Below are positions 10,401 to 64,000 of a DNA stretch of 64,000 nucleotides, one piece after another. The position numbers were made by a program, and so were the translations under genes. The notes under the pieces are model-generated. The model saw only the letters and a list, made by a program, of their open reading frames with translations. It searched no databases and was not told where the DNA came from. The DNA is from Podarcis filfolensis (lineage: Eukaryota). The stretch is from NCBI GenBank assembly GCA_964270895.1, contig OZ185442.1; one strand, given 5' to 3'. The stretch's first letter is position 1. Every line of letters begins with the position of its first letter.

Positions 10401-11276
10401 GTCAGAGTTAGAGCATAAGCAGCCAACAGAAAACACGTTGGAGGCAATGGCTTCTCAAGCTGGAGAGACCCATTATTAAAAGGGCTTAGGTGTAATCCTG
10501 GGCCCTGTAACAAAGGCCTGGTTCTCATGTAACATTAAACTATGGTTTGTTAGTGTAACTGTGGTTTGTCTGAACATGTGAAAACATATCAGCAAACTAG
10601 CCTGTTTATTTTCTGTCAGCAAATGACAGAAAATAAATGGCTTGGTACTGACTTAAAAATCATGGCTTATTCTAACTATGGTTTAACATTACTTATGAAC
10701 CTAACAACCCTGCTTAACTATGGTTGTTTTCCCTACCTGTTACCCGAGATGCTCCTCAAGCTGGGAAGGCATGACGCAAGAGTAGCTTGAAAACAAAATA
10801 AGATCTAAGCAGGTGTGGGGAACCTTTGGTTTGCCAGCTGTTGCTGAACCACCACTCCCATCAGTCCCAGCAAGCATGGCTAATGATGATGGGAGTTGTA
10901 GTTCAGCAACAACTGGAGGGCCACGGTTTCCCACACCTGCTCTAAATAAACAATACATGGCTTGTTTGTTAAATAACAACCCCAATTTATGTGAAAACAC
11001 AGCCAATATGTGATTAATTGTACACAGCACTGGCAGAAAGTTGCTTTCTCTCCTTCACACAGATGTTGCCTCTTCTTGCTCTGCTCAATATAAGCTTCCA
11101 GTATCCTTCACGATGTTTTAGGCAGGGGGAAATTATTTCAGATGTGCTTTCTCAGCTCTTTTCTAAACCGTCTTCTCTCTCATATATAGGGTGCTGGTCA
11201 CATGGTTCCACAGTATAAGCCTGGACAAGCTCAGAAGATGTTTGAATGCTTCCTCTCCAAAGCCAGCTACATCTGA
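1263..11276 (+). CDS. Cathepsin A / lysosomal protective protein-like serine carboxypeptidase (S10), complete spliced CDS, 11 exons, 456 aa
   Basis: Exons 1263-1435, 2874-2985, 3521-3652, 4636-4794, 5258-5349, 5988-6072, 6882-7031, 7329-7456, 8930-9092, 9433-9522 and 11190-11276 all have GT-AG borders and join in frame (1371 nt including stop). S10 motifs: [33 protein letters not shown] (Ser), [10 protein letters not shown] (Asp), GAGHMVP (His). N-terminal hydrophobic signal peptide. Confidence 0.95.
1658..1805 (+). mobile_element. Squamate CR1-tail short retroelement fragment
   Basis: CTGGACTAGATGGG...GATCCAGCAGGCTCTTCT 3' end; related copy near 47810-47985. Confidence 0.55.
1948..1973. repeat. 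(GATT)n microsatellite
   Basis: About 6 tandem GATT units. Confidence 0.9.
2874..2985 (+). CDS. CTSA-like coding exon 2
   Basis: [37 protein letters not shown]; AG/GT borders. Confidence 0.95.
3521..3652 (+). CDS. CTSA-like coding exon 3
   Basis: [44 protein letters not shown]. Confidence 0.93.
3832..4090 (-). mobile_element. L2-type LINE 3' end fragment
   Basis: Reverse complement of the CCCAGAGTGGCTGGGG...CCCAG...GATGGG tail also seen at 22555-22610 and 50965-51040. Confidence 0.6.
4636..4794 (+). CDS. CTSA-like coding exon 4 (catalytic Ser)
   Basis: [13 protein letters not shown]...[13 protein letters not shown]...INLK. Confidence 0.95.
5258..5349 (+). CDS. CTSA-like coding exon 5
   Basis: [30 protein letters not shown]; 92 nt. 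Confidence 0.93.
5988..6072 (+). CDS. CTSA-like coding exon 6
   Basis: [28 protein letters not shown]; 85 nt. Confidence 0.92.
6882..7031 (+). CDS. CTSA-like coding exon 7
   Basis: [25 protein letters not shown]...FDVPVP. Confidence 0.9.
7329..7456 (+). CDS. CTSA-like coding exon 8
   Basis: [42 protein letters not shown]. Confidence 0.92.
8930..9092 (+). CDS. CTSA-like coding exon 9 (catalytic Asp)
   Basis: [14 protein letters not shown]...[26 protein letters not shown]. Confidence 0.93.
9433..9522 (+). CDS. CTSA-like coding exon 10
   Basis: [30 protein letters not shown]. Confidence 0.94.
10810..10939. mobile_element. hAT-type squamate MITE in the last CTSA-like intron
   Basis: TIR CAGGTGTGGGGAAC / GTTTCCCACACCTG; internal GGGAGTTGTAGTT core shared with 19893-20023, 23015-23156 and 63860-63908. 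Confidence 0.75.
11190..11276 (+). CDS. CTSA-like coding exon 11 (catalytic His, stop)
   Basis: [28 protein letters not shown]; TAG acceptor. Confidence 0.93.
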   Translation, partial: GAGHMVPQYKPGQAQKMFECFLSKASYI

Positions 11277-11421
11277 TCTAATGCCTTTTAAAATAGTAAA
11301 TGTCACTGAAAAGTTATGGGGAAATGGTATTCCACATAGTACACAATACTTTGTAACATAGTAACATAATTGAAGCTATGTACATACTTATCTTCTTATG
11401 ACTGAATAGTTGCAAAAACTT

Positions 11422-18939: not shown

Positions 18940-19892
18940 TACATCCACAGCCAAACGTCTCATCTTTCCTCCCGTCTACCAATCTCATTTACACTTCCTC
19001 TATTGCCCACTTCATCAGGATGAAATCTTTGTTTCTCTGACTTTTTTTTTTTTTTTTGCTTTTGTCCCATATTCAGTCCATCCACAAATCAATGCCACTT
19101 CTCTCCATATATTACAGAATGATCATCTTTCTTCAGCAGAATTTCAGGCCTTGCAATCTTTTCCGCATTGGGCTTGGAAGTGGCCTGTAAAAACTGAAAG
19201 CAAACCTGGTGAAGATTTCAAGATTGCCTTGTAAACATGAAGCAATTTTATCATTTCATAAGTTTGGAATCTATATTGGCAGGACAATAACCTATTAAGA
19301 AACCTACAATGCTAATGATAAGCTTCCGTCAAGAGAGGCAAATGCCAATGAACAGATCATTTAAAATTATTTTTAAAAATTGTATATTTGCTTAAAACAA
19401 TAATTGGGAGTTGGTACTTGGGTACACATCTTATACATGACACTTCATGCTGTTGAAAGTGTAAATAAACTCCTGTGTTCTCATTAACAAGTGAAGACTA
19501 TTCATAATTCTATAGATCTGAATAAAATAGTCTTTTGCTCCGATTGGACTCATTGACTGTATTTGGACAATACACTAAACAGGGATTTTAGTGTTCTTTG
19601 GCTTGTGCACTACTTCCCTCTTCCAGTGCAACCTAGAGGAGGAAGTCGAAAGCACTTGTTTTTTATTCCACCTTGGAGTGGCTTGTTATGCCCAAACTAG
19701 GGCCAAATGTGGTTAGTTTTAACTCTGGTTGGTTTGTCTGAATAGGGCAACTTCAGACTGTGGCTTATGATGCTGGCTTTGAATAGCCACAAGCCTACCT
19801 GTAGCCCCAGATTGACTTTCAATACCATTTTCTCCCATGCCACGCTCACCTATGACTTCAGGTGTGGGGCAGGTACTGCTGTGGCTCTAGAG

Positions 19893-20023
19893 CAGCCTTT
19901 CTCAACCTGTGCATCCCAAAATGTAGTTCAACAACATCACTCCTAGCTAGCAAGGCCAGAGCTCAGGGATGATGGGAGTTGTAGTCCAACAACATCTGGG
20001 GACCCACAGGTTGAGAACCGCTG
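19893..20023. mobile_element. hAT-type MITE
   Basis: TIRs CAGCCTTTCTCAACCTGTG / CACAGGTTGAGAACCGCTG; perfect 8-bp TSD CTCTAGAG at 19885-19892 and 20024-20031. Confidence 0.85.
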
Positions 20024-20523
20024 CTCTAGAGAAACAATTGAGAGCATTACCGTGATCTGCCACTTGTTCCTTTTAGCTCCCAAATGCAGATGATCCTTGA
20101 CTCGCTTTCATTGCTGAATTGAAATTCAATGTCAAATACAAGCCCTCCTTTTGGAAGGGTAAGTGGCAGAATATTCTTCTGCGGAATAAACTTCCTCTGC
20201 AGTCCCAATTTTAATTAAATTTGGGGCTGGAAAGTATCCAGAGTGTACTTTGAGTGCTCTTTGATTCTTCAGTTGAAGGTTCACAGATGGTGTGGCAGTT
20301 TTGGATTCAGCCCTCGGGGCCGGATCTAGTTCCTGACCCCTGAAATAAACTAGTTCAAACTGCCTTTAACAGCCTTATCAAATCTGCAACCTTTTGCTTG
20401 CAAAGCAAGTGCTTTCCCATAAAACTCTGGCCTGTACCATCATTACATTTACGATTGCTTAGTTATACATGACCAGTCACTAGCAAATAGATTATGTATA
20501 ATCATTGCTATTTTGTCTTGCAG

Positions 20524-20612
20524 GTGCCATGGTTCAGAACAGAGTGAGAATACTGGGAAAGAAGAGCTGAACATACAGCATAAATTGATTATATAGGCTA
20601 ACTGGAAAAAAA
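20524..20612 (+). other. CNOT1: CNOT1 exon 2, 5'UTR part (truncated by the assembly gap)
   Basis: Pyrimidine tract plus CAG acceptor at 20523; resembles the vertebrate CNOT1 5'UTR as recalled; runs into the N gap. Confidence 0.65.
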
Positions 20613-20816
20613 NNNNNNNNNNNNNNNNNNNNNNNNNNNNNNNNNNNNNNNNNNNNNNNNNNNNNNNNNNNNNNNNNNNNNNNNNNNNNNNNNNNNNNNN
20701 NNNNNNNNNNNNNNNNNNNNNNNNNNNNNNNNNNNNNNNNNNNNNNNNNNNNNNNNNNNNNNNNNNNNNNNNNNNNNNNNNNNNNNNNNNNNNNNNNNNN
20801 NNNNNNNNNNNNNNNN
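20613..20816. other. Assembly gap (204 N)
   Basis: Run of N flanked by A-runs. Confidence 1.
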
Positions 20817-22249
20817 ATTAAAAAAAAATGAAAAGGGTATCCACAACTTAGTTTGTACTGTTTATATTCCTACTTCTCACTGCTTGATTGGTTTAGTTGC
20901 TAGAACAATCTTCCCCAACCTGGTAATCTCCAGATGTTGTGGATTACAGCTCTGACCACTGACCATGTTAACTGGTTGATGTGATTTGTAGTGCAAAACA
21001 CCACAGGCCACTAAGATCTTACTATATTTTGCTGGCTGGGAGTTGACAATTGTCAAGTTTATTAAACTCTAAGTTTCATATCTTATTTATCCTGTTATTT
21101 CGTCTTTTTTTGTTTGTTTGTACCTGAATTGATTTACGACATTGGCTTTAATTACGCAGTGGTCCTGTAGAGTTATTGCTCATTTCCATGTTTATAACAG
21201 AGTTCTTTTGAGTATTTAAAATCAGCCTGTCCTGACCTTCTTGCAATGTCTTATAGTAATTTAATGCAAAATTAAATTGGCAATACTTAGTTCATTCTAG
21301 GGTGAATTTATTGCAAGTGTTATTACTGTCTGTTTTCCTTATTAAATGAAAATTGTTCATTCTAGCTTGTATTTTTCATAGTTACAAAAGTAGTTGCCTC
21401 TTTCTTTTTTTGCATTCCTTTTTTGAATGGTTAGATTTTTTAAAAAGGGGAAAAAAAGAATTGAGGCTGGTACTGGTGGTGGAAATGATGGTGAAAATAG
21501 TGAAGTGAACCTTCAAGTTTGCAGTTCCCTGCCCAGTGTGGCTAGTAATGTCATTTAATTCTCAACCTGGATGAGATATGAAAAAGTGAATGTGGAAGAA
21601 GTGTAGCATGAAGCATGAAGAACAATTACTCCAGGGCAACATCTTTGTGGCACCATATGCCCATGTTGTTGCTGCCCTAGTTTTCCTGCAAACTTTTGAA
21701 GCTGGCAGAGGGTTTTTGGTTAGCGGTGTGTTCTGGTCTTCCTCACTTGAAGGGTCTTATACTCAGTACTACTTAGAAGTATGCTACTTTGATCCTTGTT
21801 TACATCCAACTTTCAAATGATTTTTAACTTCTATGTTTAAGGTCTTTAAATAACTGATTCTTTTGTAAAGTTTTAAATTTTCATTTTATAGTGTATATAA
21901 TACGGAGAACAATTATAATAGACCAAAATTAAAACATGAAAAACAAAACTATAAAATATGCACGTAGCAGGGGGAAATAAGACTTTTCATATTGCAAGCA
22001 GACCATAAGCGATGCAAAAAAAGAATTTGAGGATGACAGCTGCTAAAAACAAAAATCAACAACCATAAAATACTTGAGTAGTTAGAGACCATCTAGGTAG
22101 ACAGCTGGACCTTTGAACAGTAAAGGAGTCAAAAGCTGTCAAAAGGAAGAAAAGGTGAATGCAGAGAAGCTGAGTGAATTCACAGCAGAAGATATAAGGA
22201 AAGCCCCTGTGCTTAAACTCACGTTTGCTCTTTCTTCATTGACAAAGTA

Positions 22250-22608
22250 AGCTGTTGCATCTTCTTTAAAAGAAGCTACAAGTCAGCCCAGCCTGGATCC
22301 AGATGATATTAACTATAGGCCAGTGGCTAATGTTTCCTTATCAGTTTATTGCAGTGCACTATATGGGGTTCCCCTTGAAGATGGTTTGGAAGCTGCAACT
22401 GGTGCATAATATAGCAGCTAGCTAGGTTACTGCTGGGTGTTACTGCTGGTCCTGAAAGATTTTGTGCTGGTTGCCAATTTGCTGCTGAGCCCAGTCTAAG
22501 ATGTTAATATAAAAAGCCCCAAACAACTGAATACTGGTGACAAATGAGAGGGCTGCCGCCCAGAGTGGCTGGGGAAGCCCGGCAAGATGGGTGGAGTATA
22601 AGTAATAA

Positions 22609-22660
<52 letters not shown>
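22250..22660 (+). mobile_element. L2-type LINE fragments ending in a (TTA)n tail
   Basis: RT-like remnants (GATATTAACTATAGGCCAGT; GAAGCTGCAACTGGTGCA) and a 3' end followed by an (ATT)n run at about 22610-22661. Confidence 0.65.
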
Positions 22661-22663
<3 letters not shown>

Positions 22664-23014
22664 TTCCCTTCTGGGGTGTGTCATTGTAACATTTTCAGTG
22701 TCAAGTTAAGACATGCTTCTTTACCAAGCCTTTCAGGCAAGTGGATGCTTTCCCTTCTGCTGTATTGCTGCACTCCTGTTTTGTTGCTCTTGTGATTTTG
22801 TTTAGTTTTCTGAATTTAGCTTACAATTTTAATGAACTATATATTGTTTTCAACTGATATTTTGTATAAAATTTCCATGTCCATTTGGTGATGTGTGGGG
22901 CTGTAAGTATTTTTTAAAAAAGAAAATTGTAAATAAATCCTTCCTCACAAAGTGATCAAGAGAGTAGGGGCCTGCTCATTCTAATTATTCTTAGATGAAT
23001 CTGATTATCTAGAA

Positions 23015-23156
23015 CGGGGTCGGAAACCTCTGACCCTCCAGATGCTGCTGAACTACAACTGTCATCAGTCCCAGTAAGCATGGCTAGTGGCCAGGGTCAG
23101 GGATGATGGGAGTTGTAGTTCAGCAACATCTGGAGCGCCACAGTTCCCCGCACCCG
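23015..23156. mobile_element. hAT-type squamate MITE
   Basis: Same family as 10810-10939 (CTACAAC...GGGAGTTGTAGTT hairpin core). Confidence 0.75.
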
Positions 23157-23813
23157 CTCTGATATGAAGTAAACAAGCTGTGACTTGTTTGCTTGTCTGC
23201 GAGGTGAGTCATGGTCTGTTAAATAACATTAACCACAGTTTATGTGCAAACACAGCCAATATGTGATTCATTGCACACACATTATCAAAAGACAGCACTG
23301 GCAAAAAGCTGCTTTCTCTTCTTCCGCTGCTCAGTAATAAGCTTCCAGTGTCCTTTACAAAGCTTTAGGCAGGGAAAAATTATTTGAGAGGTGCTTTATC
23401 AGATTGTAGGGACGTGGGTGGCGCTGTGGGTTAAACCACAGAGCCTAGGCCTTGCCGATCAGAAGGTTGGCGGTTCGAATTCCCGCAACGGGGTGAGCTG
23501 CCGTTGTTCGGTCCCTGCTCCTGCCAACCTAGCAGTTTGAAAGCACGTCAAAGTGCAAGTAGATAAATAGGCACTGCTCTGGCAGGAAGGTAAACGGCGT
23601 TTCTGTGCGCTGCTCTGGTTCGCCAGAAGGGGCTTAGTCATGCTGGCCACATGACCCAGAAGCTGTACGCCGGCTCCCTCGGCCAATAAAGCAAAATGAG
23701 CGCTGCAACCCCAGAGTCGGCCACGACTGGACCTAATGGTCAGGGGTCCCTTTACCTTTACCTTATCTGATTAGTTTTGAATTGTTTATCCCTCTTATGG
23801 TTCCACAGTATAA
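23157..23813 (+). pseudogene. Decayed duplicate of the CTSA-like last intron and start of the last exon (split by a SINE)
   Basis: Colinear similarity to 10940-11218, ending in an exact 17-mer ATGGTTCCACAGTATAA (11202-11218 = 23797-23813). Confidence 0.75.
23409..23765 (+). mobile_element. Sauria SINE, full length
   Basis: tRNA-like head GGGACGTGGGTGGCGCTGTGG...GGTTCGAATTCCC; (ACCTTT)n tail; TSD-like TTATC(A/T)GATT at 23396-23405 and 23763-23772. Confidence 0.9.
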
Positions 23814-23899
23814 TAGGAGTTGTGATTCAACAACATCAGGAAGGCCAGAGGTTCCTAATCCAGATCCATTTCTGTTAGGCTTCTAACCTGGTTTGGAGC

Positions 23900-25620
23900 C
23901 AAAAATTACCCTGGTCTTCCTGTAGGTTGATCTTTGCTGGCAGATGGGAAATGGAACCTTGTTTGATTCTCCTGGACCTCTCAGTAGTGTTCAGTGCCAT
24001 TAATAATGATGTCCTTTCAGTTCAGCTGTCTGGTTTAAGTTTGAGAGGTACTGCTTGATGCTTGTTCTGCAGAGTTCTATTCATTTGCCCACACTGTTTA
24101 ACATCTTGATGAAACCATTGAGAAAGAGCATCTGAAGATTTGGTTGAAGGTGTCACCGGAATGAAGATGATACTCAGCTTTATATTTATTGCTCACCACA
24201 TGCAAGTGAGGCTGTGCACGCTGCTTGGGCATGGCAATGAACTGGATGAACTCTGAAAAACAGAGGTTCAGGGTGGAATTGAACATCACACTATGATGAA
24301 TGTCCCTATTAGTACAAGCAAATGCAGCTTGCCAGATGGAATGATCCTCCCTCTTCTTCCTGTGCACTGTTTTGGGGATTCTTCTGACCTCCCTTTGCAG
24401 CCAATTTTGGGGGTAGGAGGAGGAGGAGAGCAAGGAAAGCCCTGTTGTGCAAGTGGAAGCCCTCTTGCCCATAGTCACAGAAGATTAGAGGTATTGATTG
24501 GTTCAGGGTGGTCCATTGCATGACATATGGCCTTGAGGCTTTTTTTGGCAGCCTCTGCAACATTTGACACAGACCCACCCCATTTCTCACACTGCCTTCC
24601 CAAAGCTGGTTAAGTGAGGAGCTGGACTTTGGGAAGGAAGACTGAGGACTGTAACCATGTCTTAAGAGTTCTCCCGCCTCCTTCCCAAAGCTGGGAAAGA
24701 GCTAACAAGGCTTTGGGAAGGAGGTGGCAGAACTGTTGGACCCTTATAGAGATTCATGCCTCCTTTCCAAAGCCTGGCACCTCACTTAGGCAGCTTTACG
24801 AAGGCAGAGTGGGGGGCAGCATCAAATTTTGGCCATGCTCCCTTGTGTGCAACAGGGCAGTGTGCAGCCCATGGGCTCTGTGTCAAATTAGTATTGCGGC
24901 CCACTTGGTATGAAAAGTTGAGCTGCCCTGTTTGCTTGGTTTATCTATCCAGGTGAATAGTATTCAGCCGGTTCTAGATGGTGTTCTACTCTCCCTAAAG
25001 GATCAGGTGTACAACTGGGGGTGCTTATTGATCCAGCACTGGAGGCTCAAATGATCTTACGACTCAAATTACCTATTCTCAGCTTTGGTGGATACACCAG
25101 CTTTGACCTTGCCTGAGTGGTGATACCTTGGCCACAATTGCCCATCCTCTGTTGACTTCCCGTTTAGACTGTTGCACTGCATTGTATGTGGGACTGCCTA
25201 TAAAAATGGTCCAATAACTGGTTGGTTCAGAACAGGAGTGCAAAGGTTTTAACTAAGACTGTGCAGTTTGATCATATTATGCCTGTGGTTTGTTCAGCTG
25301 CGCTGGTTCTCCATATGTTTCCGGGGCTAATTTAAAAGTGCTGGTTTATAAATGGCAAGCTGTGTACCTACCTGAACCTTAAGATCTTTTGGAGGCCCTG
25401 CTCCTGGTGCCCCCACCAAAATAAGTAAGGGCGGTAATCTTTCAGTTGTGATATCCTGATTATGAGACAGCCATCTCTGGGAGGCTTGTATTATCCCATT
25501 CATGTGGTCTTTTGGCCACCAGGTAAAATCTTTTGTTTCACTCAGGCCTTCTGAAAGAGTGGTGTGGTTTGGGCCTCTCTATTTTTAAAATATTGTTTTA
25601 ATTTTGGGGTTGCTATTCAG
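23900..25620 (+). mobile_element. Degenerate L2 LINE RT region with an internal insertion (about 24330-24950)
   Basis: Remnants of LLDLSAAF-, SRLDYCNAL- and LHWLP-type RT motifs with stops and frameshifts. Confidence 0.65.
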
Positions 25621-33900: not shown

Positions 33901-36900
33901 CCCATACCTGGAATGTGGAGGTTCTGATTGACGTGCTTAAAGAGCTGGTATGTTGATCACAATCTGACCTTTTGAGGAAAAACTGATTGCCAGAAACTTA
34001 AGGGCTGTTTCATGTATGATAGATTTCCTGTAAGGATGTCACTTCTGTGAAAGAAACTGCATATGTTTGGTTATGTTTGAGCATGTGTATATTTTGCCAT
34101 GTGTGTATAGCTGGAAATGCTGAATGGTGGGTTCTGCTGCATTTGGTTGTAAAACATGTAGGTTAAACTTAGAAAAACTGATCAACAGTATTAACAGGCA
34201 AGCTCTGTATACTGTATGTGTGGCTATTGAAGAAGACAAGCAAACATGATTTTAACCAGAGATGATTATAACCAGAGAGAGGTTCATTTGGTACTAGATT
34301 GTCATCACTGTAACTAGGTCCCTGATGAACTGGCAAGTCACTATTTTCTCAAAGGTCAACTGAGAATGACATAGCATGTGTATTCTGAACAGCTATTCCT
34401 ATGCATGATTAGCATTAGTGCAGTGTCCCCTTGTTTGGCTCCATGCTTACATTGCAAATGATGTAAGATTTATTCTGCTTTGATCAGGACTTTGCAAGTG
34501 GTGCTGATTAGAGATATGGTATCATTAAAGCACACCTTTATTTGTTCTTTACTGGTGACAAATCCTTAGCAAGTATTTAGTAGTGTTTTAGTTCATTTAA
34601 GGGACACTTATCCTCTGTTGTATTTAGTGTTTTTAAAATATATTTTCTATGTAGTACCCTGTTTTTAAAATGCTGTAAACTGCTCTGAGTGGTGCATAGG
34701 GACTAGAAAGATTGATAGACATTTCTGTGTGGGGGAAAATATAAACACCTCATTCTGCATAATGCGTACAAGGACTCTTGAATGCTTGTGGGACCAATTT
34801 TTACATGATTACTAATTTTTTTAATGACTGACTTAAAATATATAATGACTATTCATCATTTTGACAACTCACATGAACCATATTAAAGAAAAAATTAACT
34901 GCAAAGTTATATTCACAGACTTACTATGGGGAATGTGCTAGAGTTCATGTTTTGCATGTTGGAAGCCTGAGATTCAATCACTGGCAACTTTGCTTTAAAA
35001 ATGGGTAAAGGGAATCAGGAAAACCCCATTTCCCCTCTGTGGTTGAGCTGTTGTCAAAAGTAGCAGTCAATATATGAGCTAGAGCTAGATGAGCTAATGG
35101 CCTGCTTCATATCTTACGAATTGTTTCTAAGTTGTATAAGGAGAAATGTGAAAGCGTGCTCTTTATTTTTGCCTCCATAAGTTGCACCACTATTTGTTTT
35201 ACTCTTTGCAGAACCCAAATTTGAACTTCAAGGAAGTAACCTATGAACTTGACCACCCTGGATTTCAAATTCGTGATAGCAAAGGCTTACAGATTGTGGT
35301 GTATGGTGTCCAGAGAGGGCTAGGGCTAGACGTCTTCCCAGTTGATCTCATATACAGACCTTGGAAACATGCAGAAGGACAGGTAAAAATCAAAGAGAAG
35401 TTTTTTTTTCATGCTTTCTTTCTCACTCACTACCGCCACATTGGTTAAAAAGGTAGAGGGACCCCTGACCATTAGGTCCAGTCGCGGACGACTCTGGGGT
35501 TGCGGTGCTCATCTCGCTTTGCTGGCCAAGGGAGCTGGTGTACAGCTTCCGGGTCATGTAGCCAGCATGACTAAGCCGCTTCTGGCGTAGCAGAGCAGCA
35601 CACAGAAACACCGTTTACCTTCCCGCCAGAGTGTTACCTATTTATTTACTTGGACTTCGTGCTTTCAAACTGCTAGGTTGGCAGGAGCAGGGACCGAGCA
35701 ATGGGAGCTCATAATTACCATAGAACTTTTAAAAAATGTTCTTTCAGTTTTTTGTTGAATTTTGGCTTTGGGGCTCACTAAGACAGTTGCTATCAAGATG
35801 TGATACATCCTTTAATACACTGCAATTACTGTAACAGGTAGCGATCAGACTATAGAAGACTGAATCTTAGAACTTTCAGAAAGTTATTTGGAAAAGCAAT
35901 CATAATAGCAGAAGTGTGAGAGGGAGGGGTGGTGATTGCTTAGGAGGAAGTGCATCAAGACAGTGTAACATGAATGTAGATATGAAATGACTCTTACAGT
36001 GATGTAATTTTGTTGCAGCTCTCATTCATCCAGCATTCCCTCATTAATCCAGAGATCTTCTGTTTTGCTGACTACCCCTGTCATACTGTTGCCACGGATA
36101 TTTTGAAAGCCCCTCCCGAGGATGACAATCGAGAAATTGCCACATGGTAAACAGTATTATTTTTCTTGGGAATACAGCTGCTTCAGCATTCTGAAATGAT
36201 GAGCCAGAGTATTCATGGTTGATATCCCTTTCTTGCTTTTCTGACAGCCTTTTGGTAAGAAGGTTTTGAGTCACTAAGTGCTTCAAACTTGAGAGGGTGT
36301 GTGTGCAACAGGGATGGCCCATTAGTTCAGCAGAGGGGTCTCCCCCAGACACTGGCTGCATTTGCTAGTCTGTAAATAGTTGCATAGATAATGAGAGCAA
36401 CATGTTAAATTAACCATGTGTATTAAGCTGCTATGAACTAAACCCTGATTATATTTTTGCTGTGGTCTGGTTTGTGAAGGTTGGATCTTGATTTCTAGGC
36501 AGGCCTTTGGACTGTTCTGACCACTCTGCATGCTACTTGATGGAAGTTGACTTTGATATCTATTTCCCCAAGTTTGGTTATTTCAAATATTGTCGAGCGT
36601 AACAGAATTTAGAATTACGTCATTTGATACCCATGTTAGCTTGGTGTAACAGACATCAAGCCAGAATCCTGTCAACTGATTCACAATATTGCATTTCCCC
36701 CCCTTATTTGTTAGGAAGAGCCTGGACTTGATTGAGTCCCTGTTGCGGTTGGCAGAGGTTGGCCAGTATGAGCAAGTTAAGCAGCTCTTCAGCTTCCCTA
36801 TCAAGCACTGTCCAGATATGTTGGTATTGGCATTACTACAGATCAACACTTCCTGGCATACTTTGCGGCATGAACTCATCTCCACACTTATGCCCATTTT

Positions 36901-63768: not shown

Positions 63769-64000
63769 GTTGGGAGCACCCTTCCCTGCCCCCAGTACCC
63801 ATCTATCTTGAGTTTAGCTGGTTGTGAGAATGGGTAGTATATTTTAGAATTGTGATGACTGAGGCTGGTGGGAGTTGTAGTCCATGGGGCCAGGTTGGCA
63901 AAGGTTTCCTTATTAAATGAATGGGAACTGGTGCAGCATGTTTTTTTACGAACACAGTCTAGGAGTTCCATGTTTTAAAATCGTGATCCATCTATGGATG

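Follow-up and report, generated by a model that had tools for sequence, protein, structure and literature searches.

Gene fragment of a neighbouring carboxypeptidase between the arms of a hAT-type hairpin MITE in a CNOT1 intron of Podarcis filfolensis: probable gap filling from a sister element 12 kb upstream

Pack-TIRs, in which host sequence lies between the ends of a terminal inverted repeat (TIR) element, have been catalogued in animals by Tan et al. 2021 (Nat Commun 12:4280, PMC8277862), who list 370 of them in 100 genomes. Those found in a single copy were attributed to transposition-independent gap filling, on the grounds that 57% reside less than 15 kb from the parent sequence, that break points are skewed towards the interior of the element, that the gap is small, and that unfilled orthologs are found in outgroups; lizards are not mentioned in the main text of that work (PMC8277862). 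Pack-MULE, Pack-CACTA and other plant Pack-TYPE transposons are non-autonomous TIR elements with host gene fragments, and are typically mobile, multicopy and often transcribed (PMC6379663, PMC8903248). Nonautonomous DNA transposons incorporating extraneous DNA have been reported in Anolis (PMC3014272), and abortive gap repair with filler DNA, following the excision of P and other cut-and-paste elements, is credited to Engels et al. 1990 where the same source refers to it (PMC3014272).

The window analyzed here, the whole 64,000-nt stretch of contig OZ185442.1 (assembly GCA_964270895.1), holds in a CNOT1 intron a copy of the end of the last intron and the start of the last exon of a carboxypeptidase gene located upstream, enclosed by MITE arms. 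The closest known kind of structure is the single-copy Pack-TIR formed by gap filling, and every testable feature of that kind is found at this locus. Host sequence lies between the ends of a TIR element, is present in a single copy, and is a fragment of a gene rather than a whole gene. The parent (10940-11218) is identifiable, and resides on the same chromosome and the same strand at a distance of 12.2 kb, that is, within 15 kb. The putative break points are internal, the left one falling within 23036-23075, and a small part of the element appears to have been lost. Single-copy Pack-TIRs feature 1-36 bp of microhomology, whereas the left switch at this locus would have involved the whole homeologous arm of a second MITE copy, so that the filler starts with transposon sequence, and the gene comes after. 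The element differs from those of Tan et al. also because it is a perfect-hairpin MITE, with both presumed break points at the loop. The kind of capture is one already catalogued in animals, and the locus extends the Pack-TIR phenomenon to a lacertid. It can be read as a clean fossil of a cut-and-paste element gaining a gene fragment without transposing, donor and product being held in one 64-kb window, with the putative resident ends, the sister element, the donor target duplication and the exon read-through all kept.

The donor is a S10 serine carboxypeptidase (cathepsin-A-like) gene on the plus strand. Its exon pieces were searched against Pfam PF00450 singly, by coordinate, and seven match the profile in colinear order, six of them being located upstream of the last exon. 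The latter (11190-11273) covers profile positions 397-419 of 420, with a score of 24.2 bits against a cut-off of 21.9, and the GAGHMVP catalytic-His motif corresponds to its start. CNOT1 is found downstream on the same strand, one exon residing at about 26507, and the composite region (23007-23871) lies in the CNOT1 intron upstream of that exon. A search for short peptide motifs did not recover, in the readable window, the first CNOT1 coding exon, to which the N-terminal ~34 residues belong. At 20480-20816 there is an exon-like stretch, preceded by a cag that resembles a splice acceptor; this stretch has an ATG in good context at about 20524, and enters a run of 204 N bases (20613-20816). The coordinates of all features are collected in Table 1.

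Table 1. Position of donor, composite and related repeats in the 64-kb window
Feature	Position	Strand	Remarks
Target duplications of MITE copy A, 8 bp	10802-10809 and 10940-10947		decayed
MITE copy A, donor side, last carboxypeptidase intron	10810-10939	+	nhmmer E 2e-52; hAT-type, palindromic
Donor tract (MITE loop, right arm, right target duplication, 242 nt of intron 3' end, 29 nt of last exon)	10859-11218	+	
Last coding exon of carboxypeptidase gene, 28 codons and stop	11190-11276	+	PF00450; GAGHMVP catalytic-His motif
MITE copy C, related subfamily	19893-20023	+	perfect 8-bp duplication CTCTAGAG at 19885-19892 and 20024-20031
Partial, diverged MITE copy, just past the N run	20918-20998	-	nhmmer E 3e-5
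Candidate left 8-bp target duplication of putative resident MITE	23007-23014		ATCTAGAA
MITE at CNOT1 site (copy B)	23015-23156	+	nhmmer E 1e-61; long inverted arms
Left arm, assigned to resident MITE, not copied from A	23015-23062	+	excess mismatches to A
MITE loop with inner right arm, derived from A	23063-23156	+	K2P 0.109 to A
Captured sequence, part 1: right target duplication of A and 3' part of last carboxypeptidase intron	23157-23405	+	86% over aligned pairs
Target duplications of SINE, 10 bp	23396-23405 and 23763-23772		TTATCAGATT/TTATCTGATT; 9/10 match
Squam1/Sauria-type SINE, full-length, 357 bp	23406-23762	+	absent from copy A
Captured sequence, part 2: weakly alignable intron end, then exon 17-mer	23773-23813	+	17-mer at 23797-23813
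Solo right MITE arm	23811-23863	+	nhmmer E 5e-6; model positions 105-161
Candidate right 8-bp target duplication	23864-23871		ATCCATTT
Second SINE copy, 5'-truncated	35449-35711	-	88% identical to 23406-23762
Further MITE-family fragment	63856-63909		

The two MITEs proposed in a first-pass annotation of this DNA, one in the last intron of the carboxypeptidase gene (copy A) and one at the CNOT1 site (copy B), were both recovered by nhmmer, and a third (copy C) belongs to a related subfamily. These MITEs are 130-142 bp long and have no coding capacity. The inverted arms of copy A match over 46 nt at 78%, and over the terminal 17 nt at 94%, and as single-stranded DNA the element forms a hairpin over its full length (-46.5 kcal/mol, z -8.95). 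The single-stranded DNA hairpin energy is -43.1 kcal/mol for the CNOT1-site MITE and -35.4 kcal/mol for copy C, z values ranging across the copies from about -6.5 to -9. The TIRs of copy C begin with CAG, and the perfect 8-bp duplication at its ends identifies the family as hAT-type; the 8-bp duplications of A and B are decayed. A TA-flanked, Tc1/mariner-like MITE, as A and B might be taken for, was ruled out by the duplication at copy C, and from the latter it also follows that the ATCTA found to the left of both A and B denotes target preference, not extended homology.

Comparison of 10750-11300 with 22950-23900 by BLAST, as advised in the same annotation, returned one long colinear match (10803-11155 with 23007-23402, E 1e-54), to which an exact 17-mer is to be added. 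The sequence past the MITEs, described there as following the donor block by block, does so at 75.5% over 196 columns (10964-11155 with 23214-23402, E 1e-33), and no further copy of 10964-11155 is found in the 64-kb window. Upon removal of the SINE and of one copy of its target duplication, 10803-11218 and 23007-23813 fall into one gapped local alignment, identity over aligned pairs being 80% in the MITE, 86% in the flank (10944-11155) and 17/17 in the exon piece. The 17-mer (11202-11218 = 23797-23813), which corresponds to codons M V P Q Y K, is colinear with the rest, 8e-7 chance 17-mers being expected in the neighbourhood. Taken alone, the 46 nt that separate the 17-mer from the last strong block show no significant similarity (p=0.54), and the colinearity of the 17-mer rests therefore on its position and exactness. 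The claim that the copy resumes at the 17-mer without the splice acceptor holds within this single alignment, an 18-nt gap in the CNOT1-site copy taking out the acceptor and the first 12 exon bases, His codon included.

The donor exon is the conserved C-terminal exon of Peptidase_S10 proteins, and copying thus went from the gene to the CNOT1 intron. The start of the donor tract was set by the divergence change point described below, with 2-unit support in A from 10832 to 10871. The copied tract measures ~355 bp, 279 of which are gene sequence. The earlier figure of ~280 bp of copied gene sequence is accordingly correct, but the tract starts inside the MITE and not after it. Its limits are sharp, since the 110 bases past either end score like shuffles (p=0.31 beyond the 11218 end, and 0.59), the captured sequence, used as positive control, reaching a local score of 99.5 against a shuffle mean of 10.6. 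A weak match between 11246-11273 and 24756-24783 (E 0.81) was taken as due to chance, because it lies 940 bp off the diagonal, and depth is single copy as far as 24300.

Copy number was monitored in relatives. In twenty runs, which come from eight studies and seven organisms, half or more of the words sampled from 22000-25000 are present (31-mers, at least 52%), and two contig sets and two raw-read sets were placed on 22600-24300 at 80% likeness; depth figures thus refer to relatives ~2% diverged, not to the assembly itself, and are summed over both read directions. Raw-read depth was 1.14 and 1.95 over the unique flanks, 1.87 in both runs over the captured stretch (23170-23397), ~35 over the solo right arm, ~7000 over the MITE right arm, and ~1e5, up to ~1.3e5, over the SINE. 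At 80% likeness or more, no second copy of the cargo apart from the parent was detected in the raw reads of two related lizards (depth ~1-2x). A cargo depth of ~1-2x, against thousands for the MITE arm and ~1e5 for the SINE, shows that the captured piece is not a repeat of high copy number, nor a Pack element present in several copies. The first-pass annotation had warned that the first ~70 shared bases could be the end of a repeat; the first 57 bases after the MITE are at single-copy depth, and the warning can be dropped.

The same figures bear on the view that no capture took place, the shared sequence belonging to some longer interspersed repeat and the 17-mer match being due to chance. The shared block does always adjoin a MITE, in the same orientation, and the 46 nt preceding the 17-mer add no significant similarity of their own. 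Yet depth over 23170-23397, at 80% likeness, equals that of the flanks in two raw-read runs, there are two copies only in the window, 17-mers are hardly expected by chance at the rate given above, and the exon is the conserved S10 catalytic exon; this view is effectively refuted. Both conditions named at the outset as fatal to a capture, a high copy number of the shared sequence and a 17-mer devoid of colinear support, are at odds with the depth and with the gapped alignment, which includes the 17-mer.

Mildly raised depth was noticed to the left of the composite, at 22771-22827 and 22885-22941, where contig word depth is 190 and 505-546 vs. ~35, and a smaller rise is seen at the same places in the raw reads of one relative (X24). 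The former bin, at the end of an ORF (22544-22795) with a long leucine run, suggests a simple repeat, and the latter may be a small low-copy repeat.

Depth is relevant also to a mobile Pack-type element, that is, a composite built at another MITE, possibly nearby, that reached the CNOT1 intron whole, by transposition. Transposition of hAT elements tends towards linked sites (local hopping), terminal inverted arms are present at both ends of the composite, and the flanking octamers match at four positions out of eight. Against this stand the cargo depth of 1-2x and the lack of a second copy besides the parent at 80% likeness or more. The extra internal right arm and the copy of the target duplication of A are predicted by read-through from A, and are not needed by a transposed unit. 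Furthermore, published multicopy Pack-TIRs are far from their parents, and single-copy ones close (PMC8277862). Transposition of a ready-made composite is on the whole improbable. Several copies of the composite, as a mobile multicopy Pack element would have, were not observed at a cargo depth of ~1-2x. Unlike plant Pack-TYPE transposons, the composite is single copy, old and decayed, with an exon piece of 29 nt, no acceptor and no reading frame.

The two copies do not diverge evenly along their length. The change point of best fit comes after 10858/23062, where the left arm has its inner end, with a log-likelihood ratio (LLR) of 6.85, a permutation p of 0.007 over all change points and a 2-unit support interval of 23036-23075, in a test made on the unpolarised substitutions of one sequence pair with ~56 left-arm columns. 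Mismatches between the CNOT1-site copy and A are 19/56 to the left (34%) and 34/275 to the right (12%). The difference is also found when CpG sites are excluded (Fisher p=0.0004), as in an arm-only alignment (16/57 vs. 34/270, p=0.007). The K2P distance to A is 0.445 in the left arm, 0.109 in the loop and right arm, and 0.152 in the flank. No arm pair is more similar than the right arms of A and of the CNOT1-site MITE, which share 89% identity. When the CNOT1-site MITE is folded at minimum energy, the terminal 27 nt of the left arm are not paired with the inner right arm, while A pairs end to end. The divergence shift at the inner end of the left arm makes the CNOT1 site a mosaic, formed by its own left arm, by copied loop, right arm and 279 bp of flank, and by what is presumably its own right arm. 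As both junctions are located at inner arm ends, the replacement would have been confined to the resident loop. The same divergence picture would result if another MITE copy had later converted one or the other left arm.

Such a conversion is part of a rival scheme, in which all of A and 279 bp of flank were copied or pasted in one step, via fragment capture at a break or template switching, beside an unrelated MITE remnant that was already truncated. There would be no resident left arm, and the divergence of the left arm would stem from later ectopic conversion or local hypermutation. In favour of a one-step event, the alignment does cover the whole MITE together with 5 bases on its left side, a preferential fit between the solo right arm and the local left arm is lacking, and the match of the outer target duplication does not reach significance. 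The 34% vs. 12% divergence, however, with a change point exactly at the inner arm end, requires an extra ad hoc event; the 5 shared bases (ATCTA) are accounted for by hAT target preference, as at copy C (CTCTAGAG); and a filler ending exactly at the inner end of a complete arm has to be seen as a coincidence. A duplication of this type is unlikely.

The right end of the composite is less well preserved. A right arm following the 17-mer, said in the first-pass annotation to complement the local left arm well, is indeed present, and shares 72% identity with the right arm of A, but its pairing with the local left arm does not surpass that with other arms. Duplex energy is -21.1 kcal/mol with the local left arm vs. 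-23.4 kcal/mol with the left arm of A, and no special fit to the local left arm was found by either identity or duplex energy. The solo right arm is the most decayed arm, and for this reason neither measure discriminates among partners; since the pairing is no better locally, the derivation of both outer arms from one element is presumptive, the solo arm being taken as the right arm of the resident element. The right junction coincides with the first base of a complete right arm, although the limit between exon piece and arm is ambiguous within ~5 nt (TATAAT), microhomology being obscured by decay. In line with the earlier remark that no clean 8-bp duplication survives, the outer octamers match at 4/8 bases only (p=0.11, not significant).

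The composite was probably formed by the break of a resident MITE in its loop, patched from the upstream MITE with run-on into the gene. A hAT-type palindromic MITE would have been already resident in the CNOT1 intron, and a double-strand break or a stalled fork would have occurred in the loop, where the hairpin has its tip. The 3' end bearing the left arm may then have paired with the equally oriented, homeologous MITE of the same subfamily that lies in the last cathepsin-A-like intron, 12.2 kb upstream. Repair synthesis would have copied the upstream loop and right arm, and 279 bp more, including the end of the intron and 29 bases of the catalytic-His exon. The new strand would have been released, and its joining to the resident right arm would have involved no more than a few bases of microhomology, to give the order left arm, upstream loop with right arm and gene piece, right arm. 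Later changes comprise small indels, one of which took away acceptor and His codon, substitutions amounting to ~14% between the copies, and the insertion of the Squam1/Sauria-type SINE.

Homology ends abruptly on both sides, as break repair predicts, the left limit lying inside the MITE and the right one where a MITE arm has its inner end. A K2P of 0.445 in the left arm against 0.109/0.152 elsewhere fits a resident left arm with the remainder copied in. Repair of a break from the copy 12 kb upstream, already put forward in the first-pass annotation, is supported by the same abrupt ends, by the low-copy filler, by a same-strand parent 12.2 kb away and by the mosaic divergence. Gap filling of the synthesis-dependent strand annealing (SDSA) type and replication template switching give an identical product, and are not separable at this locus. 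The composite looks like a fixed, single-copy, non-coding fossil, and, as the captured piece has neither splice acceptor nor open reading frame, no function is expected from its sequence.

The interruption of the shared sequence by a SINE, named as Sauria before, is confirmed by the target duplications that border the element (Table 1). Squam1/Sauria SINEs are described as ~360 bp long, with a tRNA-related head containing pol III boxes, a 3' end with short direct repeats, a target duplication and a very high copy number in squamates (PMC10058329). Compared with this description, the SINE in the composite agrees in length and in having 3' short direct repeats (PMC10058329); no tRNA was found by ARAGORN in its head. 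The donor is free of the SINE, which was thus inserted after the capture. The window holds one other copy only, and this is partial, which is too little for a consensus on which to date the SINE.

The filled form is present in another species (X20), whose contigs span every junction with 2-3% differences. Some run from the left flank into the MITE, and from the MITE through the filler into the SINE start, and one from the SINE end through the 17-mer and the arm into the right flank. The structure is therefore real, and predates the split of these species. The capture is old, since the two copies differ by ~14%, vs. ~2-3% between species sharing the structure. In 2-10 contigs each of X15 and X20 the MITE right arm (23118-23140) is joined straight to the SINE start (23408-23416). 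These joins skip ~270-296 bases, and have sides of 21-30 nt only. They are probably other loci or alignment artefacts, and not a filler-less allele, both sides being high-copy repeats.

The composite can also be set against known repair products. Filler DNA is left after Ac/Ds excision (Ds filler DNA). As in abortive gap repair, an interrupted homology-directed repair with a template switch would have left foreign DNA between kept transposon ends. From excision repair, in contrast, large internal deletions with break points near the termini are expected, whereas at this site both arms are complete and the loop alone is replaced, so that an internal break fits better than excision-triggered repair. 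A transposase would not be required, and may have had no role.

Palindromes and hairpins are fragile and break at their centre, and stalled forks may resume by template switching (FoSTeS/MMBIR). The site has in common with fragile palindromes a long near-perfect inverted repeat (-43 to -46 kcal/mol), with both junctions at the centre; judging from this geometry, a hairpin or cruciform may have caused the break. The locus suggests that homeologous MITE copies can guide template choice. It is a tentative and rather doubtful extension that the hairpin MITEs of wall lizards, with their thousands of copies, are at once prone to breakage and beacons of homology for repair, so that a hairpin broken at its tip is patched from a neighbouring member with run-on into its flank. 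If the process is recurrent, MITE pairs spaced by no more than tens of kb would regularly supply squamate introns, over short range, with duplicated gene fragments, and the process would represent a route to Pack elements starting from long transposon homology rather than microhomology. An effect on CNOT1 or on the carboxypeptidase gene is not evident from the DNA examined, and the value of the locus hence lies in illustrating the process, and in providing a search image for surveys of the whole genome.

Two details of the MITE arms and loops may be added. ACTACAACTCCCATCA or its complement is found in each arm (23050-23067 and 23104-23121 at the CNOT1 site, 10845-10863 and 10887-10904 in copy A), and resembles a ZNF143/THAP11-type promoter motif. 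The donor loop lacks, at 10884/10885, 13 bases that are found at 23089-23101, in copy C and in the family majority derived from reads, which indicates that the donor lost them after being copied.
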